In this document: positions 1-61,063 of the stretch, piece by piece | Layout of the letters: each line of letters begins with the position of its first letter | Position numbering within the stretch: position 1 is the stretch's first letter | Assembly: GCA_010909165.1 (NCBI GenBank) | Contig: MU008160.1 | Span: 1,426,001 to 1,490,000 of the forward strand | Direction: 5' to 3' | Source of the DNA: Anthoceros angustus | Taxonomy: Eukaryota; Plantae; Anthocerotophyta | Length of the DNA: 64,000 bases | Notes under the pieces: generated by a model | What the model was told of the DNA's origin: nothing | Databases searched by the model: none | Seen by the model: the letters and a program-made list of their open reading frames with translations, nothing else | Translations under genes and position numbers: made by a program

Positions 1-792
1 CTGATCCTTTGAGGGTTCTTATCTTAGCGTGCAACAAAGCAGGCAAGATAATCTCCAAAGAAGCAGACTTGGAACAGGTGACTGTTGTGCGTGATTGCTC
101 TCTAGCTGTGAATCTACACGCACAAGGAGGAATGGGAAGGTCTTTATGTAAACTGGTCAATTTTGTCTCACAGGTCATGCAGGAGCTTCCTAAAGCTATC
201 CAGAAAACGAGTCTACTGCTTTCTGTCTTGGCTGTCGTGGATCAACCAGCACTTGCAAGCTGACACTTATATGGGCTATGTTCTTGATCTTGCTCGTGGT
301 CACGCCCTTTCTTGTTGTAATGATCCCACAACCCGGTCACTTCATTGAACTGTAAGTGAGGATCGGGCCCGGCACAGCTCTACTGCAAGGACAAAGGACC
401 ATGAACAGAGCGTGTTCGCAAGCCAGCCGGTGGGCACGCACGTCCATCTGCATCAAACACTTGTTATGTACCTAATATGCATGTAGGAGTTTAGGGTTGG
501 GAGTGAGTTGGCGAAATTGCCTCACCAGCACAAGGTCCGGTCACTTGCGGACACCCTTCACAGCGCTCCTTCCTTATTCCAGTCATACCAGCTATGTCTA
601 CCCTGTCCCTCGCTTTGGTAACATCTGGACCTCGTCTGCGTTGTCCACGCTCGAGCTTGCCCTCGAACTGTGAGGTAAGGCGCTCCTGTCCGTCCCACTG
701 CTCGCCCGCTCTCTTCGTTCAGTTGGCTACAGGTCTCTAGGTGCTCGACTGTGCCTTGCTGGCACCGCCGCCCTCCCACTGGCAGCAACTGG

Positions 793-820
793 TTGCCGCC
801 TTGCCGCCTTGCCGCCTTGC
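793..820. repeat. (TTGCCGCC) x3.5 micro-tandem repeat
   Basis: ttgccgcc ttgccgcc ttgccgcc ttgc read directly. Confidence 0.9.
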
Positions 821-937
821 GTACCTCTTGCCATCGTGTAGGTCCAGTTGATTCCTCTTAGGAGTTTCTTAGGAATTAGTTGGCTTTCTATTCAGCGGCT
901 ATGAGAGCCAAGGCATCTCGGGTGTGGAATTATTGCT

Positions 938-1446
938 ACTGCAGACATGACTACACCGGGAGATGGATGTGATACAGATATGACTGCACCGGGAGATGGA
1001 TGTGATGCAGAGATGACTGCACTTTGGAGATTGATGTGACACCGGGGGAGACGGATGTGATTCAGAGGAGATGACTTGCACGGGGGCAATTGGATGTGAT
1101 GCAGAGATGAGTGCACCGGGGCAAATGGATGTGATGTAGAGGTGATGACTACACCGGGGCAAGTGGTTGCGATGCAGAGGAGATGACTGCACCGGGGCAA
1201 ATGGATGTGATGCAGAGATGATTGCACCGGGGCAAATGGATGATGACTGCACCGGGCAAATGGATGTGACGCAAAGGTGACTGCACCGGGGCACATGGAT
1301 GTGATGCAGAGATGACTTGCACCGGGGCAAATGGATGTGATGCAGAGATGACTGCACCGGGGCAAATGGATGTGATGCGACATGACTGCACCGGGGCAAA
1401 TGGATGTGATGCAGAGATGACTGCACCGAGGTAAATGGATGTGATG
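938..1446. repeat. 35-bp minisatellite, ~14-15 copies
   Basis: Unit GGATGTGATGCAGAGATGACTGCACCGGGGCAAAT repeated head-to-tail with degenerate copies and no spacers. The overlapping His/Pro/Cys ORFs are by-products. Confidence 0.92.
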
Positions 1447-1629
1447 TGAATTTGAACATCCATGCCTTTAGGGGTTATTTAGTCTATGTTTTGAAGAAGT
1501 TGGTGAAGATTGCAAAGAGGTGTTCTCATCACAGTGAAAAGTTTTATCGAGTATCGAGGCAAGTTGGAGAGGTTAGAGCTCCGAAGGATGAGGATATTGA
1601 AGAGGTTGGAGCTTTGAAGGCTGGAGAGG

Positions 1630-2245
1630 TTGGAGCTTTGAAGGCTGGAAATGCTGGAGTTACAACGGTGGTGCAAAATGCAAGAGCTGGAGATGCTGCA
1701 CGTACTAGAGTTGTGAAGAATGTAGAGATTGGAGATGTTTGACATATCGCAGTTGTGGAGAGTGCAGGGACGGGACGTATGGCAGGTAGAGAAATAAAAT
1801 TTAATCCTATCTTCAATCTGCTTAAGGTAGAGATTTAAGAATTACGCATGAGCCACCAGCAACAGTTAGCACATCATGAACAGGAGATTGAAGACTTCAA
1901 AACTTGAAATAGTCTTACCAGCAGCAGGTTTCCAGCTTCAAGTCTTCATCTTGAATTTTATTGATAGTGAGATTATTTCAAATCTTCAATCAGCTGTTCA
2001 TGGCGTTCCAAGTGTTGCTGGTGGCTCATGCATAAGTCTTAAATCTCTGTCTTGAACAGATTGAAAATTACATCAAATTTTAGTTCTCCACTCATCAAGC
2101 GTTCATTCTATGCTTTCTCCACAAGCTGCATTATGTTCAACATCTTCAACCCTTATATTGTCTACAACTATGATATGTCCAGCATCTCCAGCTCCTGCAT
2201 TCTTCACCCCTGCCATAACTCTAGTATCCCCAACCTCTAGAGCTT
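1630..2245. repeat. Diverged inverted duplication (foldback), ~290-bp arms, ~45-bp spacer
   Basis: 1829-1900 matches the reverse complement of 1977-2048 at 61/72 nt. Colinear similarity of roughly 65-70% continues out to ~1630 and ~2245. Confidence 0.85.
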
Positions 2246-3180
2246 TAGCCTGTGATCGCTCCAAAGAGTCCACAAGTTTGTCTTGGACTCTTTAGAAAAA
2301 CTAGTTAACAAGGGTTCCTTACCTTATTCTTTTTGCCGGAGGCCTTCAAAGGGGAGACCTCAAGGTGCGGCCTGGCAATGAGTCCGAGTAACGAAAGATT
2401 TATGAGGGGACAGCTTTGAAGGCTTGCCACAGGTGCTCTCTAGTGTTGCAAACATGTGATATTTTTATAAATTTGAACCGCAAAGGCATTGAAAACTTCT
2501 TGTAATTCTGGTTGCTTCCATGCACTGCGTCAAGCGCAATCGACTCTGAAGAGAGAAATGACAAGCTAAATGGCCAAGCAATTGTCCTCCTCCTCAGTTC
2601 CTTGGGGCCCTTGGTGAATGTCTTGCTTGCTGTCAGTTTGTAAATTTCTTTTAGCATCTATTCTAGAAACTGGGGTACCTATAGAACTGGGAACCGATTA
2701 GGATTCTGAGAAACTAGCTTTGGTACGCTTAGGGCAACTGTGATTTTGAGAAGCTTACAATGACGGAGGAATCAAGCTCTATTACATGAAGATACATGAG
2801 GGGAAAGATTACATATAAGAGAAGGTTCCAAAAGATTGTGAGTCAAGATCTGGATGGAGGAAATTGGTGGTTGCAACTATTAGTTTTAAGAAGAGACATG
2901 AGGTGCTGGTTGATCAAAATCTCATTCCTGAAGAGCATGGCAAGGACCCATTCCAGTTTGGTTGACTTCTATTGCCTTTAGATATGCACTCTGTAGATTC
3001 ATGTTATGTTGTACTCTGTAGATTCATATTATGTTGCATCATTTATCTTTTCTACCACACACATTTGGTGGACGTGTGCTTGAGAGTTTTCAAAGACAGT
3101 TTTTGACATGAGTTAGATGTCCTACGCTCAGCTGGAAATGTGCAAGCTTTCTTCAGACCACTAGCTGCTTGCTTACACGG

Positions 3181-3846
3181 TCGATGTTGTTAGGTCTGAG
3201 TTTTTTGTACTCTTTGTCTAGGATTTGAACACTAGGCGCTTACTCCAAAAACATACAAGATAAGGAATGGGCGAGCACCTCCCGAACACTCTTTTACACT
3301 TTGATCATTGTGATACCTGTCGACGAGAAGCCAATGACTGTGATACCTGCAAGCGAGAAGCTCATGGCTGTGATATTTGTGAGCGAGAAGCTGATGATTA
3401 TGACACCGCCAAACAGAGCGTGACATGATACCTAGGAGCGAAGTTGATGGTGATACCTAGGAGCGAGAAGTTGATGACTGTGATACTTGCGGTGAGACAA
3501 CGATGTTGTTAGGTCGAGTTTTTGTACTCTTTGTCTAGGATTTGAACACTAGGCGCTTACTCCAAAAACATACAAGATAAGGAATGGGCGAGCACCTCCA
3601 ACACTCTTTTACACTTTGATCATTGTGATACCTAGGAGCGAGAAGTTGATGATACCTAGGAGCGAAGTTGATGGTATGATATTTGTGAGCTGATGATTAT
3701 GACACACCAGGCCGATATGATACACGCGTTGGGGCCGATGATACCTAGGGCGAAGTTGATGATCGTGATACTTGCGGTGAGACAGTGGTAATGTACCTTA
3801 CGAGGCTATTGGTTTGATACGCTAGAAGGCGATGGCTCTGATACCT
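3181..3846. repeat. ~320-bp tandem duplication containing a degenerate 30-bp array
   Basis: 3181-3318 recurs at ~3502-3635. TGATACC/TGATAT/TGACAC units start at 3311, 3341, 3371, 3401, 3451 and 3481. Confidence 0.85.
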
Positions 3847-3913
3847 TGTCAAATAGAGGTAGAAAAAAATATTCTTGTTTAATACATAATATTTTTCTAC
3901 CCTTATTTGACAA
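3832..3913 (-). mobile_element. tRNA-iMet-type primer binding site adjacent to a 67-bp hairpin (LTR-retroelement relic)
   Basis: GGCTCTGATACC (3834-3845) is the complement of the TGGTATCAGAGCC PBS. It is followed by the inverted repeat TGTCAAATAGAGGTAGAAAAAAATATT (3847-3873) / AATATTTTTCTACCCTTATTTGACA (3888-3912). Confidence 0.55.
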
Positions 3914-4529
3914 TGCCGGATAATATGTTAAGGCCTTTAAGGGTGGCTGCATCTAAGTCTCAAAATTGGAGCCGACGCAGCAATGTATGGCAACCCTTAT
4001 TCTCGGGCAAAGGTAAAGGTGGGGAGTTTTAGTGGGTGAGGGAGTTTTTCCCAAGTTCCACATAACTTGCGATGGTATCTAAGTACGTACTCAGACGACC
4101 TCGGGAAGAGCATAGTCTCTTCCTATTGGGATGATACGATGTGTAACATAGGGGAATCAGAACCCTTGCTGAAGATTTCTCCCCCGGGGTTGTTTTGATT
4201 TATTTTCAAAATATCAAATTAAAAAAAATTAATCTAAGTCTCAAGGGATGCTCAAAACACTAGTAGCCATCCATATTTTAGGTCGACTTCTAATTGTTGT
4301 GCTTCGTGAGAGTGTGTATAGGGTTTTTGGTTGAAAGCTAGATGAGAGGGATTCTTATTGTCTGGTCTTTGTGGAGAGTGATCCAGACTTTTCTGTTGAA
4401 GTTGGTAACACAAAAGATTGGTGTTTCAATAGCATCAATGACAGGTCCAAGAATTCAAGCGAGGTGATTTTCATGGGGTCACATAATCCGTATTAGACTC
4501 ATGTGTTGGGCTCAACATTTAGCAACACT

Positions 4530-4900
4530 CAGGGGAGACTAGTATGCGATAATATCTGCTGATCTGGTCTCTCCAGGTGTATTTGATGGATGCCAACAAA
4601 CATCAGGCTCCGTTGCAGTTGGTTCAAAGGCGGAGGCCTGGGTTGGAGTATTCTGTTGAACATCACACTGGTCTTGTCTACATTCTCACAAATTTTACAG
4701 CAGATGACCATGATGTACACGATTCTGGCAACATCAGACTCGCTCAGACCTGACCTAAAGAGGGCAGTTTTCCGGGGTTCGCATTGCTAAGATTGCGGCC
4801 CCTTGACCCACTCATGCTTGGCAGCAACTTATGGTAGCACCTGCGTGGACGTAAGCTGGGGGAAGTCATGTGACTCTCTAAGAACAGTGTTGCAAACTGT
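4530..4900 (-). mobile_element. Possible degenerate LINE 3' fragment (zf-RVT-like)
   Basis: Broken frames give RCYHKLLPS..RGRNL..CPL..GQV and LMFVGIHQIHLER, loosely resembling the W..LP....L..RG...CPLC...ES..HL and W.IW.ERN motifs. Weak. Confidence 0.25.
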
Positions 4901-5433
4901 GGTGGCGACTGAACCGGGTGTCATATTCAAGAACATGCGCAGTTTCCAGGAAGGTATGATGCGTTAGAATGGAAGGGTGCTACCAGAGGACGAAGGCTCC
5001 CGGCTGGGTTGAGCCTGCTGCTGTTTGCACTGGACCGGTCCAGAGGATACTCCGTGGTCAGATTGACGTTGTAGATAGGCAGCAACCAGCGTCGTGTCGA
5101 TCCCCGATAGCCGGTCGACCATGGCGCCGCAGCGAGCCTGCCCGATCGTGTGCGCCCCTCTAACCTTGCACATCACAGTATGTACAATGTTCAGTAACGT
5201 ATTAAGGTCAGCTTAACTCAAGTAGGGTCAGCTCACCTGAACTCAGCTCACCTTAGCTCAAGTTAGCTCACCTGAAGGTGGCTCTATCGGGTGAATAGTG
5301 GCGGCAATGGCGTGGTCAGCGTTACCCGTCCATGTCTCAGTTGGGACAGGGACGGCCTGAAGCAAGCACACCAACCCCAAAAGCAATGTCCTCTGTCGTC
5401 CACGCTTGAGCACTGGCTACTTCATCATTTTTC

Positions 5434-5838
5434 TCACGGTCGGCCCTTACAACTGCAGCAACCAGCGGCGAATCGATGCACCCGGTACGCATCTCTTACA
5501 ACAATGTCTCTCTGTTCGACCCTCGACATGATCTCTGTGGAACTGTGGCAGTCACTGCACATGCGTAGATTCTTGGTTAACACCAGAGGTGTCCCACTTG
5601 GAGTGTTCAAGAGACCAAACGCCAGAGCTAGCTTCTCAGCATGCCCACAAAGCGCATCTTCCTTTTCCTTCTCACACACTGGTTTCAACACCAACTTTGT
5701 GTGAGGCACGTGGCCTCCTTCCTGCTTCATACGTGCATTCGTGCTCTCTACCTTAAGCGCAATATCCTCTCTCCTTTCTCCCACCAGAAATCTATGTACC
5801 TGCTTATTCACCTCAATGGTCGCCACTGCGGGTTTCTT
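5434..5838 (-). other. DYW:KP deaminase-fold domain, GRP subtype
   Basis: KP motif ([11 protein letters not shown]), HAE in place of HSE, CxxCH zinc ligands, and terminal GRP instead of DYW. Confidence 0.93.
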
Positions 5839-8800
5839 GTTAGCTCCCGCTGCCCTTCTCTGTGTTTCGATCCTGCCTACATCGGTCCACCTACCTGCAT
5901 CTGCATAGGCATTGGCCATGAGCACATAACCGGGGGCATCCTGGGGGTCCAGCCTAACAATGCTTTCAAAACACCACATGGCCCTCTCTACATCCCCGTG
6001 ACTTTTGCAGGCATTTAACAAAGACCGCAAGCCCACAACATTACTTTGGCCCTCACATGATAATAGGATCTTCTCTGCCTCATCTAAATGGCCTGCCCGC
6101 CCAAGAAGATCAATCATGCAAACGTAATGCTCAATAGTAGGTCTGATGCCATGCTGTTCAGCCATGGAATCGAAGTGCTTGCGACCGGCTTCGACCAGTC
6201 CCTCATGGCTGCATGCTACCAAAAGGCAAGTAAAGGTAGCATCATTAGGCTGAATGCCTGCAACTAACATCTCCTCAAAGCAAGCTAGTGCCATGTGACC
6301 TTCATCACAAGTACCATACCCAGATATCAGGGCATTCCATGTCACCACGTTTTTTGCGTTCATGCTGTCAAAAACCTGGCGTGCGTCTTCCAGTTCGCCA
6401 CATTTTGCATACATGTCTACCAGGCAGTTGCCGACCAGTACGTTATCCAGAAGTCCTCTTTCACAATCTGTGAGTGCAGCTGCCTGCCCTTCTGTAAGGC
6501 ACCAGTGCTTGCACAGGCCTTCAGAAGGCAAGCAAAAGTAACATGGTCAGCCAAAATCAGGCCTCTGCTCCATTTGTCCACACAACAAGCGCCTCTTGGA
6601 GTCCTTGCTGTGCATACCCAGCAATCAGGGCATTCCATGTCACCACATCCTTTGTGGCCATGCTGTCAAAAACCTGGCGTGCATCTTCAGTTCACCACAT
6701 TTTGCATACATGTCCACCACATTTTGCATACATGTCCACCAGGCAGTTGCCCACCACATTTTGCATACATGTCCACCAGGCAGTGCCCACACTACGTCAT
6801 CCAGCAGTCCTCTTTCCAATCTGTGAGTGCAGCTGCCTGCCCTTCTGTAAGGCACCAGTGCTTGCACAGGCCTTCAGAAGGCAAGCAAAAGTAACATGGT
6901 CAGCCAAAATCAGGCCTCCTGCTCCATTTGTCCATACACAAGCGCCTCTTGAGTCCTTGCTGTGCATACCCAGCAATCAGGGCATTCCATGTCACCACAT
7001 CCTTTGTGGCCATGCTGTCAAAAACCTGGCGTGCAACTTCAAGTTCACCACATTTTGCATACATGTTTACCAGGCAGTTGCCCACCAGTATACTACCCTG
7101 CAGTCCTCTTTCCACAATCTGAGAGTGCAGCTGCCTGCCCTTCAGTAAGGCACCGGTGCTTGCACAGGCATTGAGAAGGCAAGCAAAAGTAACATGGTTA
7201 GCCAAAATCAACCCCTCCTGCTCCATTTGTCCATACAGAACAAGTGCCTCATGTCCGAGCCCTTGCTCTGCATATCCAGCTATCAGGGCATTCCATGTCA
7301 CCACATTCTTTGTGTCCATGCTGTCAAAAACCTGGCGTGCATCTTCCAGTTCACCACATTTTGCATACATGTCCACCAGGCAGTGCCCACACTACGTTAT
7401 CCAGCAGTCCTCTTTCGACAATCTGTGAGTGCAGCCCTTCTGTAAGGCACCAGTGCTTGCACAGGCCTTCAGAAGGCAAGCAAAAGTAACATGGTCAGCC
7501 AAAATCAGGCCTCTGCTCCATTTGTCCACACAATAAGCGCCTCTTGAGTCCTTGCTGTGCATACCCAGCAATCAGCGCCGTCCATGTCACCACATCCTTT
7601 GTGGCCATGCTGTCAAAAACCTGCCGTGCATTGTCCATTTCACCACATTTTGCATAGCCAGATATCAGGGCATTCCATGTCGCCACATCCTTCGTGGCCA
7701 TGCTGTCAAAAACCTGGCGTGCATCTTCTGGTTCACCACATTTTGCATACATGTCCACCAGGCAGGTGCGCAACACTACGTCATCCAGCAGTCCTCTTTT
7801 CAGAATCTGTGAGTGCAGCTGCCTGCCTTTCTGTAAGGCACCAGTGCTTCCACAGGCCTTCAGGAGGCAAGCAAAAGTAACACGGTTAGCCAAAATGAGG
7901 CCTTCTTGCTCCATTTGTCCATACAGAACAAGCGCCTCTTGGCCCAGTCCTTGCTGTGCATACCCAGCAATCAACGACGTCCATGTCACCACATCCTTTG
8001 TGGCCAAGCTGTCAAAAACCTGGCGTGCAACTTCAAGTTCACCACATTTTGCATACATGTTTACCAGGCAGTTGCCCACCAACGTTATCCAGCAGTCCTC
8101 TTTTCACAATCTGTGAGTGCAGCTGCCTGCCCTTCTGTAAGGCACCAGTGCTTGCACAGGCCTTCAGAAGGCAAGCAAAAGTAACATGGTCAGCCAAAAT
8201 CAGCCCTCCTGCTCCATTTGTCCATACAGAACAAGTGCCTCATGTCCAGCCCTTGCTGCATACCCAGCTATCAGGGCATTCCATGTCACCACATCCTTTG
8301 CCATGCTGTCAAAAACCTGGCGTGCATCTTTCAGTTCACCACATTTTGCATAGCCAGATATCAGGGCATTCCATGTCACCACATCCTTTGTGGCCATGCT
8401 ATCAAAAACCTGGCGGGCATCTCCCAGTCCATCACATTTTGCATACATGTCCACAAGGCAGTTGCCAACAAACAGGTTAGTAGGAATGCCACTGTGCAAC
8501 ACATCACAGTGCACTTTTCTGCCAGATTCCAAGTCAGCGCCAAATGCACAAGCTTGAAGGGCAGCTACAAAGACGTGACCATTTGCCTTCACTCCTGACT
8601 TACGCATCTCATGGTACAGTTGTATAGCCTCATTAGGTTTCCCATGCTTAGCATGCAGATTATGGAAGACCACATGAAGGCATCTGGTTTGCCACCCTGG
8701 TGAACACATCCATGGCCTCCTCTAGCCTACCTCCACATGCATACATGCGCAAGATATGGTTCCCCAAGTATGCATTCGACTCGTACCCAAGTTTGACACT

Positions 8801-9468
8801 GAGATCATGAACTCGTCGCCCACAACCAAATCCTTCTTAGCTGTACACAGTTTCAGCACAGTGCAAAACAGAGAGTCGGAAATAGCAGAGTCTGTCTGCG
8901 CCAGAGATTCCAGGGCTCCGACGGCCTCGGAAAGCTTCCCCTGCTGACAGAACGTGCTCACGGTTAGGGCCGTAACGACATCCATTTCCGATGTTGCACG
9001 CCTCCCAGGTTCAGGCTTATCCGGTGAGCTGGACTCGGAAGGAGAGGCACCATGTCCCATCTGTATATCCATGAACATGAGCTGCTCATCAACCCAAGCT
9101 GGCTTAAACATGTTGTTTAACCACAGCACCTCGCCGGACCTCTTACGCCGGAAGTCAGGGGCACGGGAGCTCTTCTTATCTCGTCTGTTGTCCCACCACA
9201 GGGTAGGGTCCAGAAAAAATTGTTGCCACAAGTGCTCCTGCTCCTGCTCCTGGCAACGACCGGCATCGCTGGAAAACCCGCCCCTACCCATACACGCTTT
9301 CGGAAGTGGAAGTGCTGGGCTCCTTACACTGCTGCACCTGGAGGCTTTGTTTGCCAGGGGTTGACTCCCTAAGATGAGGTGAGCGGGAGCTCCTGGTGGA
9401 ATCCCTGTACACACACCAATTGCAATTTGTTGGGTCCACAACGGGTCCGGTTGCCATACTGTGGCCAT
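5434..9468 (-). CDS. PLS-class PPR protein with P2-L2-S2-E1-E2-DYW:KP (GRP) C-terminus and N-terminal PDF motif; frameshifted as assembled
   Basis: About 25 P/L/S/SS motifs ([52 protein letters not shown]). The last 365 codons are open and end [10 protein letters not shown]...HAEKLA...CSDCH...CSCKGRP. Frames 8722-9468 and 8200-8709 join by single-base shifts in short homopolymer runs, giving [40 protein letters not shown]. The true start may be further upstream (~9560). Confidence 0.9.
9118..9231 (-). other. PDF motif of OSB (organellar ssDNA-binding) protein type
   Basis: [38 protein letters not shown] followed by [13 protein letters not shown] fits the OSB PDF pattern W..FF..P..WWDNR..K...PDFK.K..GE.LWL...P.WV as recalled. 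Confidence 0.85.
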
Positions 9469-10099
9469 CGTTCAGGGACCGCTGTCGGAAGATGAGTCTA
9501 ACAACAGACTATCCAGGATGCTCAGCTACTATGCATGACCACACCGTACGAGCTAGCATGGAAACCGCAGCCAAAGGCTGGGTTCCCATGAACCCGATCC
9601 CCGGGAGGCATTCGGAGTCGGCGTTTCCTATGTGAGACCCGGAATATGGCCCAGACTTGGCATTGTTACCGGCACTCCACGGGTCATAAGACCGGACGAG
9701 CCTGTCGCTCCAACGGAGCGCCAAGTCGAGACCGGAGAGCCCGTGCTCACGTATAATAATAATGGTCGATCTGCCAAGCCCGACTCCGAAAACCCCCTAC
9801 TATCGGGTCGAGCTTGGTACCATGCAGTCCATTTCTAACAGAACCGTTAAAAAAAGTTACGAGCTTTCTATGCTGTTCCCGGCGGTCTGAACTGTGGGTC
9901 ACCCAGCAAATTCTACACGTATCTGCATCGGTTCCATATAAAGGAAAATTTTTGATGAGAAAATTATGAGAAAAGTCCATCCATGAGGGTCGTGGTGAAA
10001 AGGAGCAGTTCACCTCCCTACCCATATGAAGTTTTTTTTTTCTTTTTTCTCCATATAACAAGTCAGGTTATACTCTATTTATAGATATATCAAGGGAAA

Positions 10100-10523
10100 G
10101 AAGACTTTATTATAAAAAAGAGATGGGAAAAACCCATCCACCCAAAAACAAAAGGGGAAAAACCTAACGAAGGGCTCCATGTCAGGGGGACTAGCCTCCA
10201 CGATCACACATTTCAGAACTACCAACCGCCCGAAGAACTTCGTGGTCAGGGATGTGAAAAGGCCTACTTACCACCGGTGTCAAAGAAGGCGCATCTCCAC
10301 TTTTCATTTGTCGTTCTATACCCGCTACGTTAATAACCCTACGCAAAGCGATGGAAACCCTCTGCCGGAAGAAAGCAACAATAGATATACATATATCAAC
10401 TATGGTAGTATGAAAAAATATTACAAGGCATATTTTTTTAAAGTGGAAGGCCGAATTCATCAAGATCATGCGGCTTTCCATTAACATCTTCGCACATAGA
10501 TGCCAAAGAGGAAGAAGGAGCAA
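10100..10523 (-). mobile_element. Non-LTR retrotransposon 3' relic (CRE-like C-terminus)
   Basis: FFRQRVSIALRRVINVAGIER resembles the F.QR.SIALQR C-terminal motif of RLE-type LINEs. A T-rich tail follows on the same strand. Confidence 0.4.
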
Positions 10524-12210
10524 CTAAGCTCAATGCCAAAGAGATATTATAGGGAGTCCTATTGATGTTTCACAAGTGAGGCCATAATAACGTTACTTGA
10601 AGCAATCGTGCCTATAAGGCTCTACTACAATATTTTAACAGACTCAGGCCACGGAGTATCACCGTTGCAGGAGTGGGGAGTGCGGGACTATTAAGAGGTT
10701 TGAAAAGGGACGCCAAATGATCACATGTCATTTAGTGTGTATGATCAGTACTAGTCTTTTGGTTGAATAGTGCCAAACGATCACGTGCAACATGAAGAAT
10801 CAGATTTAACGTGATCAAGATGAGTCCTATAATCAGCAACCTAAATATTTCATACATCCACAACTTCTTTATCCACGCAATTTACTGGTCCACAAAGATC
10901 TTTACAAAACATGGACATATTAGATACAGGGGTTACCACGAAGTCTTCCACAAGAGAATGAAAGGTAGTAAGCTTCCTGTATATGAGACCTAGGCCCTAG
11001 CTGTCAAATCAGTTTGTCGGGGACAACCACCAAATTAGGCCGCTTCTTTTTGCAAAAGTTTGGTGGTAGAGACTAGTCATATTAAGCTAACTTCTCCAAA
11101 GAATCAACAATCTTCATTGCAACATTTGAATCAGAGGTAGACTTGCAAGTCTTGATGTGCTTATAAGTGACTTGGCATGATTTGATGAACTCAAGCTTGC
11201 AGTAGAGGAATGTAATCGTGCAAGGCACTTGGTAACATGTGCAAACTTTTGAGCATTTGCCCTCGGACAAGCCTTTGGCTCTCCCACATGAATAAAGATG
11301 TTACCATTTTCAACTTGCCCTAAGATATTCTCTCTCATTTTCAGCTTGCCCCAAGATATCCTCGCCCACACTTTCCAGGATATTACCAATTTTCGATTTC
11401 TCCAAGAGCCACATGTAGAGAGGATTGCGTAAATTGCACCGTTTCTTAGGCAATTTCATTTTTGCATAAGCTGCTCTCAATGTCGCCAAAAGGTATGATT
11501 AGGCTAGGAGATAGTTTTTTTTACGCATTAGGCCTTGTATTTAAGGGACGAACAATATGAGGACCTATAAAGACTCCTAGTTTAAATGAATTCGCATCAT
11601 TTAGTTTGACGAACTAAGTGCCAACAATGTAACAAACTTTATAGTTGGTACGAATGGATGTAGTTGTTAATAAACTTTCTACATAATTCAATTTATCTGT
11701 TAATTATTTTTATCATATTTTTTACTTATATAATTAAAATAACTCAAAAATTGGCTTCATGTTTAAAGTACAATTTCAACTAGGCTTGGGATATCACAAC
11801 TCTAGTACTCCGTTCATGTTCGAAGGACAATTTCAACCAAGCTTGGGACATTGAAAACCGGATCCTACGATACTGTTTGCTTGATCACGCCTTGTAGCAA
11901 AATACTCTCCTGCGGACCACAAAGTCGCGGATTCATGACGAGGCTCTTTAACTCTGTTGCCAGAAAAACACTGATGATAGATGCGCTTTCTGTGCTAGCT
12001 AGTCTCACCTCGTAAACTTTCACTGACATACTCACAAGGAAATTGCCAGAGCTGGTGAAAGCTGAAATGATCTTTCAAAGAGAGCTGCTACCTGAGTAGT
12101 TAGCTTCATTATCAAAAGGTTTTGAGCTTTACAATTAGCCATAAGTTTGGGTTGAGCTTTAGCTCCACCACTTGTTCTGATAGTCATTCCGCTTCTCTGC
12201 TGTCATGCCG

Positions 12211-12807
12211 TGTGATACTAATCTCTGCACTTGGGTTTAGTGTTTGATTAGCATTAATTAATCTAATTACTTATCTTTAAGTAAGTAATTAGTGTTAATT
12301 AATCTAAGGTGCTTATGCTAATTAAGCATTCATTATGGTTAATTAATCTAATGTGCTTATGTTAATTAAGCATTGATTAGTGTTAATTAAACATGGTTAG
12401 CAATAGCTAAGTGGATAAGCTCAAGTAATATGCTTTGGCATATTCCTTGCATATTATAGTGTATTCTTAGGATATTTACGCATATGCGATGCCCGATAGG
12501 ATATCTTAGGAATATGCCGATGCAGTCTAGTATATATAGACCCTTCCATTGAGACAAGCTCGGATCATAGCTTGTCCACTGATATCTGATCTGAGCGTTG
12601 TGAGGAGGCCAAAGCTATGACTCAGGAGCGATGTGTGAGGAATTTGCGTGTTGTTATCGTGGGGAGAGTGTGTTTGTGCCACGACGTGCGAGCTACTCCC
12701 TCCTGTTACTATTGGTTTGCACCTATATATCTGCGTATTAGATTTATTTGCTTGGTTGTTGGTCGAGGAAGTGCTTATGTGAATTCAAGTGCTTACCTCG
12801 TGCGACA
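12211..12807. mobile_element. Possible solo LTR with TTAATTAA-rich repeats
   Basis: TG...CA ends, TATATATAG box at ~12530 and repeated (G)TTAATTAA units at 12255-12390. No matching TSD found. Confidence 0.35.
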
Positions 12808-14471
12808 GTGCTGAAGATTTCAATTCTTTGAAAAAAGGTTCTTCTACATTCTCAAATGCATCTAGCCAAGTCGCTCCTCACTGCAAATATTTCGACGACT
12901 GGCTTATGACAAGCTTTGATTTCTCTGACATCATCCGATAAATAGCCATTTCCAGGAGCCACTTGCGGAGCGCGCTTTTGTCTAGTCTGTTTCCTCCTCC
13001 GTACCTCTGAGGTGGTACGATTTCCTTCCAGTCATTCTTGGAAGTCTTCCATTCGTTGTTATTCATGGGTGGAAATTTACTACTGGTGAAACTGTCTCGT
13101 TGACAAGTCTTCTATCTGCTATTCATGGATGGAAATTTGTTGTTGGTGAGATTATCTCAAGTCTTTATTTACTGTTCATGGCATTCCAAATCAAACATAT
13201 TCAAATTTAGACTCCAAAGTTGTTCTGGGTTGTCCAAAAAGCTTGAGTAGGTGAATCTATTTGTGCTCAAATGTTTTTCAAATCGCCAAAAATCCCAAGT
13301 AGTAAAAAAAGGAATATATATATCTTTCCCATAAACAAAAAGAACAAGCCATCTTTCGCAAAATCCTTCATTTTCTCTTTCAAGATTGCAATCTATCCAT
13401 CGTAACTCGAACAATGACTGGCACCAGCCTCATGCAACGATGGGCTTTCCAATAGTGTACGTATTGCTTGCATCTCCTTCGCGCATAGCCGTACAAGCAT
13501 CTCGCAACAGGAGCCACGCTTCTGCGTATTTTGAAGAGTGTGGTCTCTGCCGAAGCAAATGCGGCAAAGCTCTGTGACATCGACATGCCTTTCTAACTAT
13601 TGCAGTCAGCCAATCATCCTCACCAAAATTCAGCATGAAAAACTCAATCTGGTTTGATTTGAGGCGTGATTAACGACAAATCCTTGAAAAAATTGGGTCG
13701 GTGAACGCAAACGTTTTGTACCAGTTCCAACTCTATCACTACACCGCCTCCCTGTCCAAGCCTTCGTATACCACAAAACAAGGACGCCATCTACCCACAC
13801 ATCGCCCTCCCATTCGCTTCTCCACCCCACCACGGCCGCATGTGCGCCTTCTCTCATCGGTCTTGGCGGAAAGACCATAAGGAGGGAAGCATATGGCGGC
13901 GATCGTCGTGGCAGAAACGCCGAGAGCCCCTAGCTTGCCTCAGACTGATTCCACGTTCAGATTGAGATTCTAAATGTTGTTGTGGTCCGATCTTTTATGC
14001 TTTGTAGATCAGGAGGTGCGGATCAGAAAGCGGAATCCGACTCTATGGCATGCTAGAATTATTAGGGTCCCATATTTTCGTGAGAGCTCGAAACCGACCT
14101 CAAATTCTTGATTTGAGTAGGTCGGTCATTCTTGGGTTAAACTCCTCAAAGAAAAGAAGACTTGGGAAAAAGGTACTCCAAAGTCCCATTCTAGGCCATG
14201 TTTGAATCACTACTCGTCCATTATGGCATGCGGAACGCCATGCATGTACACTATATTTTTAGTGAATAGAACGAATATTGTTGGAGTTTACCATCGACAC
14301 TCGGCTTTCCTTAGAAGGTGATGAGGCAATTCAATTACTGACACCACTCAATCATGAGAGACTGCTCTTTCAAGTGAAACAACAAATTCTAAGTTAAGAA
14401 CACAAGAAATTTAATAACAAGCAGAACTTGTCGCTAATGTCATGATGTGGAAAAGGAGAAGGTAAGTGAGA

Positions 14472-14566
14472 AGAGCATGTTGGCTAGAGACCACAAGGTC
14501 GGAGGTTCATGTCCGCCCTCTAGCATGCTGGCTAGGGACCTCAAGGTCGAAGCCCTCCCTCCGGCG
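14472..14566 (+). pseudogene. Two tandem degenerate tRNA-Asn-derived 3' fragments
   Basis: AGAGCATGTTGGCTAGAGACCACAAGGTCGGAGGTTCATGTCCGCCCTCTAGC aligns with plant tRNA-Asn(GTT) as recalled (AGAGCGTGTGGCTGTTAACCACAAGGTCGGAGGTTC..CCCTCCTTCTAGCG), but the anticodon loop is altered. The second copy (14522-14566) has an internal deletion. Confidence 0.6.
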
Positions 14567-15338
14567 TTATTCCACTCTACACTTGCTGGCTCCTTGTGCA
14601 ATACAAACCGTCTACATACTACCAAACAAAAAAAAAAAATCCTTGACGTGGCACCGTGGAGCTGAAGAGAACCACCTCGCTTTTATTATGTATTATTATT
14701 GTGTCTTGCTGACATGAAAACGCTAACCACTGTCCCTCTCGGAGCCCGCCGCCTGGTGATGCAGTTGTGCCGATAATACTGAGCCAATGCAGAGGCTATA
14801 TCTCCTTCACCCAAACCGTAGAGTACGTTCCCACTTGAGGAAGCTATAGGCTGGGCGGGGACTCCCTTTCAAACTGGAGAATTTGCGTTTCCCGCGCGCG
14901 GCCGCGGACTCGGGCTCTCCTGTCTTGCCTCTTGATTGCATCCGTGGAGCCAAGCTTGATTATTCAATGACGAGCAGGCTGCTGCCAACCGCATCCTTGT
15001 CGCCCCCGCGCGCAATCGACATCGCAAGCAATGTGTGCCACGTTCTTGCTGAACCAGCAGCGCCCAGTCTGCGCTTGTCCAACTTTCTGGAGCGTCATCT
15101 GGCCGGGCGTCGCGGTTCTATGACCAATCTTGCTGCCCAGCCAGCGCGCTGCTGATCCCCTGCCGAGGCGAGGTTCTTGCGCAAATCTTGATTCTGTTCC
15201 CGGCTTTGTCCACCTCAGTGTGGGCGAGGGTGACGAGTTCTTGAAATCGAGCGAATTCTGTGCGGGAGGAGTGCGCGGGAGGGGTAGTATGGCGGCATTG
15301 CAGCTGCTCCTGGCGGGCTAAAGAAGAGCAGGAGAGCC

Positions 15339-18300
15339 ATGGGCAGGAGAGCGAGAGGGAGGGCCAGAGCAGGGGGCCGAGGGCGCGGGAGGAGGGATGG
15401 GGAGGACGGGATTCCGCCCGCAGCAGTCCGGCAGGAGCGGGAGAAGCAGGAGCAGCAGGAGCGGGGGAGAGAGCAGGTGGACCCTCGGATCGACCCGTTG
15501 GAGAAAATGGGTCGGGAGCTCAAGTGTCCTATATGGTATGTGTGTGGAGGCTTTCGAGGATTTTGTGGGCGCATTTCTTGGGAATGTGGGTGCGGATGAA
15601 TGTTGATGCGTTTTTGTGGGTTTGTGCAGCTGGTGCCTCTTCACGGAGACCATGACCCTCTCCTCCTGCAGCCATAATTTTTGCAAGTGAGAATTATCTT
15701 CTCCAGAGTGGTTGTGTTGACTGTGGGGATGAAATGGGAGGATGACTGATGTGCTGGCTGTCTGCCAGGAGCTGTATTACAGAGTCCATGAAGAGGATGT
15801 CTTCATGTCCGGTCTGCAAGCAGCCCACTACCCGGAGAGGTATGGATGGCTTGAGGTTTCGTGCTTTCGGTACTTGGCGGGGGGTTGTGGGATGACGTAA
15901 CTCAGCAGTGGGTTCTTGTGGGTGTTTGTGCAGAGGTACGAGCAGCACCGCATCTGGATAATTTGGTTGCGGCTTACAAGGGGATTGAGAGGTCTTGCGG
16001 CTTTAGCCTGTTTAGCTCGCAGCCATATGCAGCAGAAGCAGGTATGGATGTTGGGATAGGTGGTCCAGTTTGTGAGGTGTCCCGGTCTGACCTTGTAGGG
16101 GGTTGGGATTGACTTTTCGTCGATCTGCTGCATGTGGTTGGAATGAGCAGAGAGCTTGGTTCCTGCTGAGCTTGAGGGCAGAAAGGACTCTAAGGAGTTA
16201 GAAGGTCCGAGAGCGAAAGAGTCGGGAGTAGAGGCTCGCAAGAAGCATGAATCCAATCTTGCGTTTGCAGACATTACCAACAAGGACGGGCAGGAGAGTC
16301 ATGATGCTGGGAAGGATCAGGATGGGGGAAATACATCAGACGATGCTGGAGCCAAGGCTAATGAGGCAGAGGCAATTGCAGACGAGCCCTTCCAGGCTTT
16401 TGTTCCTGCCAAAAAGCGGCTGAGGGTGCATGTTCCACATTTTGCCAGGAATGAGGTGACGGGTAGTGATAACATGCTCGCAACGGGGGTGATTAGCAGA
16501 GAGCCGAGGAGCGGTCCTATGAGGGGAAAGAGATCAAGAGGTGGTAAGCTGTTTCAGCTGGGCCAGCCGAGCATGGCCCAGTTTCTGCTAGGGAGTACAA
16601 GTGAAACAGCAATGGGCACCACAAATGAAAGAGACCCTTCTGGCAGGGACCTCTCGATAGCTCTGCTTTTGGAGAGATCAAAGGAGGCTGAGGTGGAAGA
16701 AGCAAGGAAGAAGGAACATATCCATGTATCTCCTCCACCTGCTAGGGCGGAGAACAGACTCCGGGGGGGATTTTTGGCTCCCAGGCCAATCAGTAAGAGC
16801 GGTCAAGGCTTGTCTCAGGAACAGGCGGTGACTCGGGTACTGCCCTCCCCGTCTCTACGAATCCAGGTTGAGATTCCTCCCCCGCACGTGGAAGAGGTGC
16901 CGCCTCAAGCGAAGTCTCCCACCACTGCTGGTGATGCCCCTTTGTTGGTGGATATGCACACGCCATCGCCCGTCGCCTCGTTGAAAGACCCAAGATCGGT
17001 TAGCTCATCGCTAACTCCTTTCCGGTGTAAGAGATGGGCTTCTGGGGCAGAGGTTGGGGTTGGTACTTGGACCCTTCAGGGTTGTTCCAGTTCAGTAGTC
17101 AACAAGCTTCCTAATGGACAGATTGTGATGGCTTCCAACTCCATTGTACAAGCACATGCCAGTGGCAGGGGTCCACTTCCTCCTCTCTTCTGGCTAGGGG
17201 ACGTAATTGGAACACCAGACATGACACAACCTACTCCACCTCTTCCATCTCAACTTGCTCTTGCTCGACCCTCGTTCGACGACCTCAAAGTAGAAGAGGA
17301 TGAAAGCTCACGCAGAAAGGAAGGAGAGGTAAGATTTTCTTTTGCCCAGGGCAACGATAAAGCATGGGCCCCGTTTCTGGATACTAAGCTGTTCCTTGTG
17401 GTACTTGAGTGTAGAATGAGGTGACGAAAGGTGAAGCTGCTGCAGAAATTGACAGCTTTGATAGTGAGGTTTTTGCATGGACACAGCATCCGTGCTCTCC
17501 AGAACTGGATGCCAACCTTCAGAAGGCGCAAGTGAGTAGCACCTTCGCATCCAACATGTATTTCTAAGATCTCTGGAAAGCCATGCTGGAAGGATGTTGA
17601 CGTCATCTTGTTTTGTATGGCACGCAGGCTTCTCTTGCTGAAGTACCTTCACCACCCCGTGCACGCGGATGTAAACTGACATTTCTAAGTCATGAAGAGG
17701 CCCGACCTTCAGAGCCCACGGAACAAGGCAACTGTACCATGGATGCACCGGAGTCTGTCAAATCTCCGGAGCCAGCTGATCAAGGGCAGGAAGGGGAGGC
17801 TATCTTGCAAAAACCGGAAAATGAGGAAATACAAGAGCACGGGCAGGAGCAACAGCAAGAACCGGACGAGGGACAGCATGGTCTGCAAATGGAGGACAGG
17901 TTGGCGGCGTATGAAAGTGTGCCTGCTCAGAATCAGATGCCTCTGCAGGAAGAGGAGCAACAGGGCATGGACTGTGGTCAGGAACTTGATGAGGGGCAAG
18001 ATCAGGCTATGTTGGCAGCACCTGCTGTGTCTGCGCAGAATCGGATGAAGACAGCTTGTAAAGATATCCAACTGCCCCCTGAAGCTCAAGCTGAAACTTC
18101 TCTGCCTGATGATCAAGTAGGCCGAGAAGCTGAAGCTGAAGCAGGCCCACGGCTGAAGTATCAAAGGCAGCAGAAGAAAGTGCAGTGGGACACACTCCAC
18201 CACGAGAAACTCACTGTCGAACAGCAGCATGAGCCAGTCCCTGGGTCTTCTGATGCAGCCGTGAGTAAGCCATCAAGGAAGCGACTGAACAGGCCCAGTG

Positions 18301-59534: not shown

Positions 59535-61063
59535 ATTTTCAGGTGAAGTGTCAAGCTGGAAAGGATAATCGGGTGGCAGATGCCTTGAGTAGGGTGTTGT
59601 TAACGTTTGTTACTAACTCCGGACTGTCAACAGAATGGTTGAATGAAATTAAGCAAGCATTGCAGGTCGATCAAGAGGTGCGGCGGTAGAATGGTTCAGA
59701 CCTGACTTGGAATCAGGGTTTGCTCTTTTGGAATGGGCGAATGTACATTCCTCATCTGCCTCATATTCGACGGGCCATTTTGGTGGAGGCACATACGGTA
59801 CAGTCTGCTGGACATCAAGGTCGGGATAAAACGTTGGATTTGGTTCGTCGACATTATGACTGGCCAGGGGTCGTTCGGGATGTACAGGAGTTTGTTCGTG
59901 CGTGTGATGTTTGCCAACGTGTGAAAATCTCTACGCAGGCATCACCTGGTTTGTTACACCCACTTGCCATACCAACTACGTCTTGGGAATGTATTCATAT
60001 GGATTTTGTAACTGGATTGCCTCGAACAGCGAGGGGGCACATTGCGTTATTAGTATGTGTCGACAGGTTCACTAAGGCAGTTGTCTTGATGCCCACAACG
60101 GATACCTGTTCAGCCCCAATGGCTGCTGAATTATATATAGAATATGTGTACAGGCGGTTTGGGTTGCCGCGTGTAATCATGAGTGATCGAGATCCTCGGT
60201 TTCTATCTCGGTTTTGGACTGAACTTCATTGGGGATTGGGAACTGAGTTGTTGTATTCCACGACATATCATCCACAAACGGATGGCTTAGCAGAAAAAAT
60301 GAATCAAGTTGTGGAGACAACCCTTCGCGCTTATGTCCATACTCGTCAACAGCGGTGGGATCGGCATTTGGCTTTAGTGGAGTTTGCAATTAATAATGCT
60401 AAGCATGCTTCTACTGGACAAGTTTTCTCCCTTTTATTTGCTGTATGGTCGTCATCCACGTACCTTGTTGTGTCCGATGCATACACAATTACATGCTCCT
60501 GCACTCTTGACTTCGGCACAACATGTCGAATTACCGTCGGTAGCGGCTTCATATGGTCGACTCAAAATCGTGAGCGGCGGGTTGATCGTCATCGACGTCC
60601 TGTCCAGTTTCTTCCTCAACAATGGGTTTTATTATCCAGTCGGAATTTACCAATTGCATATGGTGTTCGAAGCTTTCTCACCGATGGGTTGGCCCTTTTC
60701 GTGTTCTTCATTCTATTGGTCCGGTATCTTATCAACTCCAACTTCCTGATACTTGGCGTATTCATCTTGTGTTCCATGTCTCTCTTCTTAAGCCCTACTA
60801 TGGCGACCCCCCGGTTCAACCCGCCTATATTGATTGATGATCATCCTGAATATGAGGTTCAAGAGATTTTGGGTCATCGGCGCCGTCGTGGTCATCTTCA
60901 ATTTTTGGTTTGTTGGACTGGGTATCCTTTGTCGGATGCCACTTGGGAACCTCTTGCTCACCTCACTCATTCTCCTCGTCTTCTTCGACTTTATATCAAT
61001 CAATATCCCGAACTTGGAAGTTTTCTCTTTGAGGGGCGGTTATATGTAGATGGCACGGGTTAG
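59535..61063 (+). pseudogene. Chromovirus pol 3' part: integrase and chromodomain
   Basis: HHCC (EAHTVQSAGHQG..CDVCQR), HMDFVTGLP..SDRDPRF..HPQTDGLAE, and chromodomain EYEVQEILGHR..FLVCWTGYPLSDATWEP. Confidence 0.92.

Follow-up and report, generated by a model that had tools for sequence, protein, structure and literature searches.

The analysed window, a 64-kb stretch of the Anthoceros angustus genome, contains a gene in which a PDF domain, the motif of plant OSB proteins, precedes a PLS-type PPR array, an E motif and a DYW:KP domain. This gene copy is probably a decayed pseudogene that belongs to a large, recently expanded nuclear PDF-PPR-DYW:KP family, and is itself most likely without function. 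The design in which a PDF is placed before a PPR array is old, being found in moss, lycophytes and ferns as well as in the A. angustus genome. PDF-PPR proteins end in canonical DYW as well as in KP/GRP domains, and the design is thus not tied to U-to-C editing.

Organization of the locus

The features of the gene are listed in Table 1. Starting with the ATG at 9468, the N-terminal frame runs without interruption until the stop codon at 8724-8722 (248 aa in the ORF list), and thus takes in the PDF motif along with the earliest PPR-like helices. The initial annotation, which had placed a PDF-type peptide at 9118-9231 and a PPR start about 50 residues downstream with no stop in between, is borne out by the sequence. 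The peptide LWQQFF...EVLWL maps to 9231-9118 and PAWV to 9102-9091 on the minus strand, and EAVGALESL begins at 8928, 55 residues past PAWV, in the same open frame. The 3' ORF (6531-5434) carries matches to Pfam E_motif (1.3e-14) and DYW_deaminase (4.7e-33), features KPAVATIEV at 5835 and terminates in CSCKGRP. As annotated, the PDF shares one frame with the start of the PLS-PPR array, and the array closes with a complete DYW:KP (GRP) domain.

Table 1 Features of the PDF-PPR-DYW:KP gene copy. Positions are those of the window.
Feature	Position	Strand	Evidence
Whole gene: disordered leader, PDF, short linker, PPR repeats, E motif, complete DYW:KP domain	9468-5434	minus	
Multi-copy sequence, about 70 nt 5' of the ATG	9469-9540	minus	contig pile-up
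Start ATG and leader of 67 aa, probable organelle-targeting presequence	9268-9468	minus	ORF list; AlphaFold
PDF domain: helix, three short strands, helix (predicted)	9055-9267	minus	BLASTP to AtOSB1, signature residues, predicted fold
PDF core motif LWQQFF..WWDNR..PDF..LWL..PAWV	9231-9091	minus	
Flexible linker, about 22 aa, S/P/E-rich	8989-9054	minus	AlphaFold and homologue comparison
First PPR-like helical repeats, in frame with PDF	8836-8988	minus	AlphaFold; collinearity with homologues
First frame break, frame 0 to frame 2	8816-8822	minus	frame chain; contigs with extra base
PLS-type PPR array, at least 14 frame segments	6001-8835	minus	Pfam, frame chain, tandem repeats
22-nt and 37-nt micro-duplications within a PPR motif (repeated ..VDMYAKCG..)	6693-6790	minus	Tandem Repeats Finder
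E motif	5812-6000	minus	Pfam PF20431 E_motif 1.3e-14, residues 178-240 of ORF 6531-5434
DYW:KP-type deaminase-like domain, 133 aa	5437-5835	minus	Pfam DYW_deaminase 4.7e-33; feature count
Stop codon of the DYW:KP end	5436-5434	minus	

The PDF domain

Sequence comparisons identify the motif as truly homologous to the PDF domain found in the OSB proteins of plants. PDF motifs span about 50 aa and feature a conserved Pro-Asp-Phe with flanking residues (W..P..WWDNR..K...PDFKHK...LW...P.W), all of which are found at the locus. BLASTP aligned the locus PDF with residues 182-241 of AtOSB1, corresponding to the C-terminal PDF of this protein (44% identity, E 6e-17), and the locus PDF aligns with all three PDF motifs of the 440-aa AtOSB3. 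All 16 signature residues, defined as the near-invariant positions in a 72-sequence alignment including AtOSB1 and AtOSB3, are kept; PPR-linked PDFs retain 15-16 of these residues, and OSB proteins retain a mean of 15.6. The resemblance goes far beyond chance, as a phmmer search of 1.84 billion proteins with the 102-aa region yielded 620 matches at E<=1e-3, 174 of which reach E<=1e-10. Most of the 620 matches have the OSB architecture, which consists of a Pfam SSB domain and 1-13 C-terminal repeats, and several bear the names OSB1 or OSB3. PDFs are also present in unrelated settings, among them a kinesin and repeat proteins of dinoflagellates.

Alternatively, the likeness of the stretch to a PDF might be fortuitous, or a separate small gene might have been joined to the PPR gene in error. 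The Pfam search of the 248-aa N-terminal ORF gave no match, no Pfam model covers the PDF stretch, and a word-index protein search with the same ORF was empty, the tool being too insensitive for a short motif (residues 15-100 of the PDF-PPR protein P0005 retrieved two proteins only). Set against these results are the AtOSB1 match, the 620 family matches, the continuous frame at the locus, the single ORFs found in other species and in a fern transcript, and the collinear alignment of 18 N-termini, which refute this explanation and leave it with virtually no probability.

AlphaFold predictions indicate that the PDF module, about 70 aa long, folds independently. The module has a pLDDT of 89.1 and a pTM of 0.75 when modelled alone, and a pLDDT of 93-97 in a 217-aa context. 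Both the leader (pLDDT about 46-60) and the linker (54-74) are predicted to be without secondary structure, and the first PPR helices (residues 161-175, 179-191 and 198-211) reach 84-94. The leader is a probable presequence, which would target the protein to an organelle. An atlas shape search with the PDF returned three PPR/DYW clusters of 57-127 members (TM 0.85-0.89), one SSB cluster (TM 0.85) and two phage clusters (TM 0.64). A phage link is not supported, as the phage_gp49 lead from an atlas feature search with the 102-aa region was weak (0.78, below the trust level) and a Foldseek search of BFVD was empty. Neither Foldseek searches of the PDB nor a wide VIA-align comparison with solved structures (best Z 4.5) revealed a relative of the PDF fold, and the structure therefore yields no functional clue.

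The PPR array and the DYW:KP end

Pfam PPR or PPR_2 matches were found in every ORF piece of the array, which is built of near-identical 306-nt P-L-S units (102 aa) and 93-nt S units. The tandem period of 306 (85% match) was identified by Tandem Repeats Finder, and repeat families D1-D8 are found in the locus region. The array is assigned to the PLS class by its tandem P, L and S motifs and the E motif behind them, though its frame is broken.

DYW:KP domains are marked by a KPAxA box, which replaces the PG box, and by a GRP-type C-terminus. The domain at the locus starts with a KPAVA box, carries HAE at residues 65-67, Lys88 and CSDCH at residues 93-97, and ends in GRP; HAE and CSDCH represent the zinc-binding HxE and CxxCH of the DYW deaminase fold. 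Its length of 133 aa and Lys88 conform to the DYW:KP subtype (132-133 aa, conserved Lys88; PMC11845758). The catalysis of U-to-C editing has been shown for synthetic KP proteins (PMC9478123, PMC11845758). Such catalysis by this broken copy as assembled is excluded.

The locus resembles the PLS-PPR-E-DYW:KP proteins of hornworts, lycophytes and ferns, which are candidates for U-to-C editing, in its PLS repeats, E motif and 133-aa KP domain, with which it shares the KPAxA box, HAE, Lys88, CSDCH and the GRP end. In contrast to these proteins, it has an additional N-terminal PDF, no mention of which was found in the KP papers searched, and a frame broken at least 13 times.

Decay of the gene copy

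The locus had been described as an editing enzyme in which the later joins require single-base shifts only. In contrast, phmmer searches with every inter-stop segment revealed that the frame changes at least 13 times over about 2.4 kb (frame chain 0>2>1>0>2>0>1>2>1>2>0>2>1>0). A frame track drawn from the best tblastn HSPs was discarded as too coarse, because HSPs crossed stops. A compound deletion (4+2+2 nt), present in the units at 7590, 6995 and 6643, causes several of the frame changes; further breaks are added by the 22/37-nt micro-duplications, where three overlapping frame pieces occur. A base following position 8818, common to most family copies, is missing in this copy; the extra C is found in 9-51 contigs per run, accounting for 33-80% of the contig depth. 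The domains are not joined by a single open frame, the first stop being at 8724-8722, and the product as assembled is only a 248-aa stub comprising the leader, the PDF and about 1.5 PPR motifs.

An intact gene in the actual genome, coding for a functional PDF-PPR-DYW:KP editor of some 1,340 aa, is unlikely; the breaks would then be assembly or polishing errors within a highly repeated family. In favour of an intact gene, the sequence is undamaged and conserved in full over the N-terminal 217 aa and over the last 365 aa, and reads from paralogues can corrupt consensus polishing. Moreover, all contigs covering the gene body are short paralogue fragments, and so do not independently confirm the breaks of this particular copy. 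However, the changes include 4-, 2- and 3-nt deletions and 22/37-nt duplications, which go beyond homopolymer slips, and the presence of the compound deletion in three internal units fits a mutation that was spread by duplication or conversion within the array. Other long ORFs of the window, such as a 776-aa CHAT-domain ORF and TE ORFs of 366-447 aa, are unbroken, which makes a uniform indel error rate of about 1 per 300 nt unlikely, and short-read contigs of related organisms hold many frame-shifted copies. Mis-polishing of a repeat family could be the source of some frame breaks; a decayed pseudogene is the probable reading of the locus as a whole.

The family of near-copies

Dozens to more than 100 distinct near-copies, many of which are also frame-shifted, were found in public short-read contigs of related organisms. 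Single PDF positions are covered by 30-104 distinct contigs in each of four runs, and many family contigs carry a frame-shifting 1-nt deletion at 9214. Being paralogue fragments, these contigs inform on the family, not on this copy. The runs on record as RNA do not contain the stretch. The 5' boundary of the multi-copy unit was mapped to about 9540. In all four runs the pile-up ends between 9482-9538 and 9539-9595, unique flanking sequence starts from about 9540, and the flank 9483-9700 is covered by a single X1 contig only. Transposon capture is not supported as the cause of amplification, as no LTR or TIR pairs surround the gene within positions 1-16000.

PDF-PPR proteins in other plants

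Intact proteins carrying an N-terminal PDF and PPR motifs were identified in Sphagnum (P0130, CAM6033764), Selaginella (P0125, XP_024517303), Diphasiastrum (P0123, KAJ7231026), Adiantum (P0099 and P0050; KAI5076972 and KAI5061374) and the Pteridium transcriptome (P0154, P0087 and P0126). The named examples come from moss, lycophytes and ferns, in keeping with the earlier remark that the design is not known from angiosperms. Two or three PDFs are present in P0005, P0050 and P0154, the latter being a single 1374-aa transcript ORF with three PDFs. As at the locus, these proteins feature a leader, a PDF, a short linker and a first PPR motif with the pattern C..G.L..A; leaders range from 45 to 80 aa before the PDF, and linkers vary in length and sequence. 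They differ from the locus in having open frames, and some have a canonical DYW (P0130) or no DYW in the model.

The closest intact KP homologue, P0119 (Logan SRR33208241), is a single 753-aa ORF with the order PDF-PPR-E-DYW and a GRP end. It is 63% identical to the locus across the last 341 aa (E 8e-155) and collinear with it from the PDF into the first PPR motif, as are the N-termini of 17 further homologues, 18 N-termini having been aligned in all. The signature of P0119 is weakened (12/16), with PDF changed to RDF, which hints that the module may be dispensable in some lineages. In a tree of the PDF segment, which comprises too few columns for firm conclusions, 14 of the 17 PPR-linked PDFs grouped with the PPR-linked PDFs of P0059, P0134 and P0143 and the fragment P0116 (SH-aLRT 81); the tree neither demonstrates nor excludes a single origin of PPR-linked PDFs.

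The pairing had been linked to DYW:KP domains and U-to-C editing. This link does not hold, as the Sphagnum protein P0130 has a PDF followed by PPR-E-E+-DYW, contains a PG box and terminates in DYW, and PDF-PPR proteins also occur in Selaginella. To our knowledge, C-to-U editing is the sole type known in Selaginella. It is very unlikely that the PDF acts as a tether special to U-to-C editing, by which DYW:KP domains would edit during transcription at R-loops or have ssDNA itself as their substrate. The PDF is a reported ssDNA binder and the family has the full KP features (K88, HAE, CSDCH and GRP), yet the Sphagnum and Selaginella proteins separate the PDF from KP chemistry, editing of DNA is without support, and this copy is broken.

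The novelty of the PDF-PPR pairing, which the initial annotation had left to be confirmed by search, is consistent with our literature search, in which no paper describing it was found. RRM-PPR, MORF-PPR and OZ fusions are similar in that a module binding nucleic acids or partners is added to a PPR editor, and the kingdom-wide catalogue of editor fusions that reports them makes no mention of OSB or PDF (PMC13386178).

Discussion

Arabidopsis OSB1-4 were described by Zaegel et al. 2006, as summarised in PMC6963530 and PMC13393729; the former, a review, states that the PDF motif of OSB1 suffices for ssDNA binding. The locus PDF has the same 16 signature residues as the Arabidopsis motifs (36-44% identity), and its predicted fold agrees with theirs (TM 0.85 to an SSB-family cluster). 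OSB proteins carry an organelle transit peptide; the leader of 67 aa at the locus, predicted to be disordered, may serve as one. However, the central OB-fold that precedes the PDF in OSB proteins, seen as Pfam SSB in true OSB matches, is missing, the 67 aa before the PDF being predicted as disordered. Moreover, the PDF is single and N-terminal at the locus, whereas it is C-terminal, after the OB fold, in OSB proteins. As the rest of the protein is of the RNA-editing factor type, the locus does not belong to the OSB family.

The family design consists of a targeting leader, a PDF, a flexible linker, a PLS-type PPR array, an E motif and a DYW:KP domain. In intact members, the site on the organellar RNA would be chosen by the PPR array, and the base conversion would be carried out by the DYW:KP domain. 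The basic, Trp-rich PDF, carried on a linker of about 22 aa, would most likely bind single-stranded nucleic acids independently of sequence. Located at the N-terminus, the PDF would face the 5' side of the RNA bound by the array; its partner could be either RNA adjoining the footprint of the PPR array or nucleoid ssDNA, and binding may raise affinity or place the editor at transcription sites. Nucleic-acid binding by the PDF in PPR proteins is suggested by analogy with ssDNA binding by the OSB1 PDF (PMC6963530), and the conserved aromatic and basic positions (W, W, W, R, K, F, K, W, W) appear typical of single-strand binders.

The PDF might instead be a protein-protein docking or import/sorting element, directed for instance to OSB-type or nucleoid complexes, a role that we consider rather improbable. 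Its location directly after the presequence, with a flexible linker before the RNA-binding array, would suit docking, as would the lack of a solved structural relative among nucleic-acid binders and its occurrence in a kinesin and in dinoflagellate repeat proteins, reminiscent of a generic adaptor. The sole experimental statement available (PMC6963530) is that the OSB1 PDF is sufficient for ssDNA binding; this argues against docking, as may the aromatic and basic character of the conserved positions.

We tentatively propose, as a possibility that is itself doubtful, that seedless plants have a branch of PPR editors (C-to-U and U-to-C) in which the PDF serves as a second, sequence-independent single-strand grip, coupling editing to the nucleoid or to nascent transcripts. 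Conversely, the "ssDNA-specific" PDF of OSB proteins might bind RNA too, in which case the link between DNA maintenance and RNA editing in organelles would be ancient and lost in seed plants. PPR-DYW editors are commonly viewed as consisting of an array that reads RNA and a catalytic tail. A conserved PDF, derived from the organellar DNA-maintenance toolkit, would be a third working part of these editors, and provides a testable handle both on substrate finding in hyper-editing plants and on the PDF ligand. The module may in addition be relevant to engineered U-to-C editors of the KP type, which are constructed without a PDF. The locus itself is of smaller value, as it documents a large, young family full of dead copies; such copies matter for the gene counts of "editing factors" in such genomes.

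Organization of the PDF-PPR gene

The initial annotation of this minus-strand locus proposed that an OSB-type PDF motif is fused in frame to a PLS-PPR-DYW:KP editing enzyme. The ATG opens a 248-residue frame, which ends at a stop at 8724-8722 and includes the peptide LWQQFF...EVLWL quoted in that annotation. The first PPR-like helices lie 55 residues past PAWV (EAVGALESL begins at 8928), and no stop separates the PDF motif from the first PPR in the sequence as assembled. The 248-residue ORF has no Pfam match; PPR families are detected by Pfam in the next four ORF pieces, and E and DYW domains in the last. The PDF motif and the DYW end each occur once in the window.

Features of the PPR locus and of other ORFs in the window
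Feature	Position	Strand	Remarks
PPR gene	9468-5434	minus	ATG at 9468, C-terminal GRP end
PDF core peptide LWQQFF...EVLWL	9231-9118	minus	
PAWV	9102-9091	minus	
E_motif in last ORF piece	ORF 6531-5434	minus	Pfam 1.3e-14
DYW_deaminase in last ORF piece	ORF 6531-5434	minus	Pfam 4.7e-33
22- and 37-nt micro-duplications	6693-6790		
Retroviral-type aspartyl protease ORF (TE)	23132-23872	plus	
CACTA-type tnp2 transposase ORF (TE)	26977-28077	plus	1.6e-49
Ty3/gypsy integrase ORF with chromodomain (TE)	59720-61063	plus	
CHAT (caspase-like) ORF	61662-63992	minus	intact, 776 aa, reaches window edge; Pfam 6.2e-33

From its KPAVA box to the final GRP, the DYW:KP domain spans 133 residues, including HAE (65-67), Lys 88 and CSDCH (93-97). 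Published DYW:KP domains measure 132-133 residues, with a conserved and essential Lys88 (PMC11845758), and the window domain fits on both counts. The last 341 residues are 63% identical (E 8e-155) to P0119 (P-numbers denote proteins retrieved by the phmmer search described below). With all these elements present, the DYW:KP domain is complete.

Identity and predicted fold of the PDF domain

An exhaustive phmmer search with the 102-residue region at 8985-9291 (minus strand) against 1.84 billion representatives returned 620 proteins at E<=1e-3, 174 of them at E<=1e-10. The majority are 250-500 residues long and have 1-13 matched stretches in the C-terminal part. In sampled matches, Pfam detects an SSB domain near the N-terminus, for instance in P0030 (4.4e-13) and P0079 (5.6e-12); together with the C-terminal repeats, this corresponds to the OSB architecture. 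P0024, P0034, P0010 and P0017 are labelled OSB1 or OSB3 by their source databases. The C-terminal PDF motif of A. thaliana OSB1 (P0257, 261 aa, residues 182-241) is 44% identical to the window peptide (E 6e-17), and all three PDF motifs of A. thaliana OSB3 (P0188, 440 aa) align with it. In an alignment of 72 PDF sequences (A1), the window keeps 3/3 invariant and 13/13 nearly invariant positions. These matches bear out the OSB-type assignment and identify the N-terminal motif as a PDF domain.

The PDF domain has been described as plant-specific. Symbiodiniaceae proteins of 460-850 residues (Effrenium voratum P0004 and P0265-P0271, Cladocopium sp. P0007) are made of 7-9 PDF-like repeats, matching the window motif with phmmer E-values of 1e-50 and 5e-48, and thus place the PDF also outside green plants. 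In a Coptis chinensis kinesin motor protein (KAF9616283, P0053, 1526 aa; Pfam Kinesin 1.8e-86), PDF-like stretches at ~336-388 directly precede the motor domain; the fusion could be genuine or the product of a faulty gene model.

AlphaFold2, run on A1, models the PDF module alone with a pLDDT of 89.1 and a pTM of 0.75; three short strands lie between a long helix and a C-terminal helix. When the first 217 residues are modelled together, pLDDT is ~50 in the disordered leader (1-67), 93-97 in the PDF (68-138), 54-74 in a linker of ~22 residues and 84-94 in the first PPR helices. The confident PDF between a leader and a linker of low pLDDT is thus a self-contained domain held by a flexible tether. 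Neither Foldseek on the PDB nor VIA-align (best Z 4.5) detected a solved relative of the fold. A shape search of the ESM Atlas retrieved, over all 75 residues, three Streptophyta PPR/DYW clusters (57, 63 and 127 members; TM 0.85-0.89) and one SSB-family cluster (TM 0.85), so that both PDF contexts are recovered independently of sequence. Two phage (Uroviricota) hypothetical-protein clusters also match the model (TM 0.64 over 58-67 residues), and an atlas feature search gave a weak lead to Phage_gp49; neither was confirmed by Foldseek on BFVD.

Decay of the locus

To trace the coding path, each stretch between stops in the three minus-strand frames was queried against intact homologues. Starting in frame 0, it moves to frames 2 (~8820), 1 (~8690), 0 (~8655), 2 (~8215), 0 (~8085), 1 (~7560), 2 (~6930), 1 (~6790), 2 (~6769), 0 (~6738), 2 (~6688), 1 (~6584) and 0 (~6460), that is, at least 13 changes between the PDF frame and the 3' end, as assembled. 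Relative to the intact unit at 7989, the internal units at 7590, 6995 and 6643 carry compound deletions of 4, 2-3 and 1-2 nt, all in the same 19-residue stretch. Together with the micro-duplications, these deletions indicate that the breaks are not simple homopolymer slips, and the earlier view that only single-base shifts separate the later pieces does not hold. A uniform assembly error rate of ~1 indel per 300 nt is unlikely, since the CHAT ORF and the tnp2 (366 aa) and integrase (447 aa) ORFs are unbroken in the same window. As judged from its broken frame, the locus is best regarded as a pseudogene, one of many, most likely without function, rather than as a working editing enzyme. It sits in TE-rich DNA; no LTR or TIR pair was found around it. 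Six ~69-nt tandem units (61-96% identity) occupy 1039-1446, inside overlapping minus-strand ORFs (892-1459); the one ORF scanned over the array (899-1459) has no Pfam match.

PDF-PPR proteins in other plants

Among the best 150 of the 620 phmmer matches, we looked for proteins in which an N-terminal PDF is followed by PPR repeats. Single ORFs of this kind are carried by Logan contigs (P0119, 753 aa, PPR-E-DYW with a GRP end; P0005, 1371 aa, three PDFs) and by a Pteridium aquilinum transcript (P0154, 1374 aa, three PDFs). Further examples are the Pteridium transcript fragments P0087 and P0126, Adiantum capillus-veneris P0099 (801 aa) and P0050 (512 aa), Selaginella moellendorffii P0125 (910 aa) and P0151 (911 aa), Diphasiastrum complanatum P0123 (503 aa) and Sphagnum compactum P0130 (564 aa). 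The fusion is thus real outside the window. P0130 has the order PPR-E-E+-DYW; its box is of the PG type (EPGRTWIEV) and its C-terminus is DYW, and the PDF is hence not tied to the KP (U-to-C) type.

Eighteen aligned N-termini share one layout, in which a variable leader precedes the PDF and a short linker, also variable, leads into the first PPR motif (C..G.L..A). Of the 16 signature residues, 15-16 are retained in PPR-linked PDFs, except P0119 (12/16); the mean is 15.6/16 in the remaining A1 PDFs, mostly from OSB-type proteins. This near-complete signature argues for long-term purifying selection. In P0119 (residues 70-144), the closest intact KP-type homologue, WWDNR has become CWDIR and PDF has become RDF; the module may be relaxed in that lineage.

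The PDF-segment tree places 14 of the 17 PPR-linked PDFs in a single group (SH-aLRT 81), together with four sequences from outside the original PPR-linked set. Three of these are themselves PPR-linked, because P0134 and P0143 continue into the first PPR motif and P0059 precedes a PPR-E-DYW ORF; the fourth, P0116, is a short fragment. Sphagnum and Selaginella PDFs lie elsewhere, with weak support, and a single origin of PPR-linked PDFs is neither shown nor excluded. P0059, the closest single-domain match (58% identity), comes from a contig of another species (L003, Logan SRR33208241), of which positions 6001-8506 show ~70% DNA identity to the locus. There, the 162-residue PDF ORF is followed on the same strand by a 44-nt gap and then by a 657-residue PPR-E-DYW ORF; the interruption is due either to a single stop or frameshift or to a short intron. 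The opposite strand (2066-5089) encodes a 1007-residue PPR protein lacking a PDF.

A multi-copy family in public reads

The complete stretch was present in no public run; the best share of sampled words was 0.46, across 11 studies and four organism labels. Contigs of four runs were aligned on 8000-9700 at >=90% identity. Thousands of short contigs stack from 8000 to ~9540 and then end, and the unique flank (9483-9700) is covered by one contig only, from the run X1. All contigs over the gene body are paralogue fragments, informative on the family and not on the indels of this exact locus. In each run, 30-104 distinct contigs overlap single positions of the PDF region, indicating dozens to more than 100 distinct close copies in those organisms. 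Most copies (33-80% of depth) have an extra C after 8818, coinciding exactly with the first frame loss of this copy. In two of the four runs, many copies (23 and 48 contigs) read T5 instead of T6 at 9214, in the FF codons, which shifts the frame of the PDF itself. This variant makes up ~60% of the summed depth in X1, suggesting that already dead copies were amplified. The short-read data, which are independent of the assembly, thus reveal a large and young PDF-PPR family full of dead copies.

Possible role of the PDF in PPR proteins

A full-text search for the PDF motif with PPR, OSB or DYW found only OSB reviews. Of two papers from 2026, one surveying 182 OSB genes (PMC13393729) makes no mention of PPR, and one cataloguing domain fusions of editing factors kingdom-wide (PMC13386178) makes none of OSB or PDF. 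Within the full-text literature searched, this pairing of a PPR editor with an OSB-type accessory domain is undescribed. The PDF-PPR-DYW:KP layout of the initial annotation stands as an observation; a working enzyme at this locus as assembled and a KP-specific association are not supported.

The PDF of OSB1 reportedly binds ssDNA (PMC6963530), the one experimental basis on which we infer that the PDF in PPR proteins is a putative single-strand binder. In intact members, the PPR array would read RNA and the DYW:KP domain would convert the base. The PDF, rich in conserved Trp, Arg and Lys, would bind single strands non-specifically next to the N-terminus of the array, the end that faces the RNA on its 5' side. 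Alternatively, it would anchor the editor to nucleoid ssDNA. Though the copy analysed here is one pseudogene among many, the PDF-PPR architecture merits experiment.
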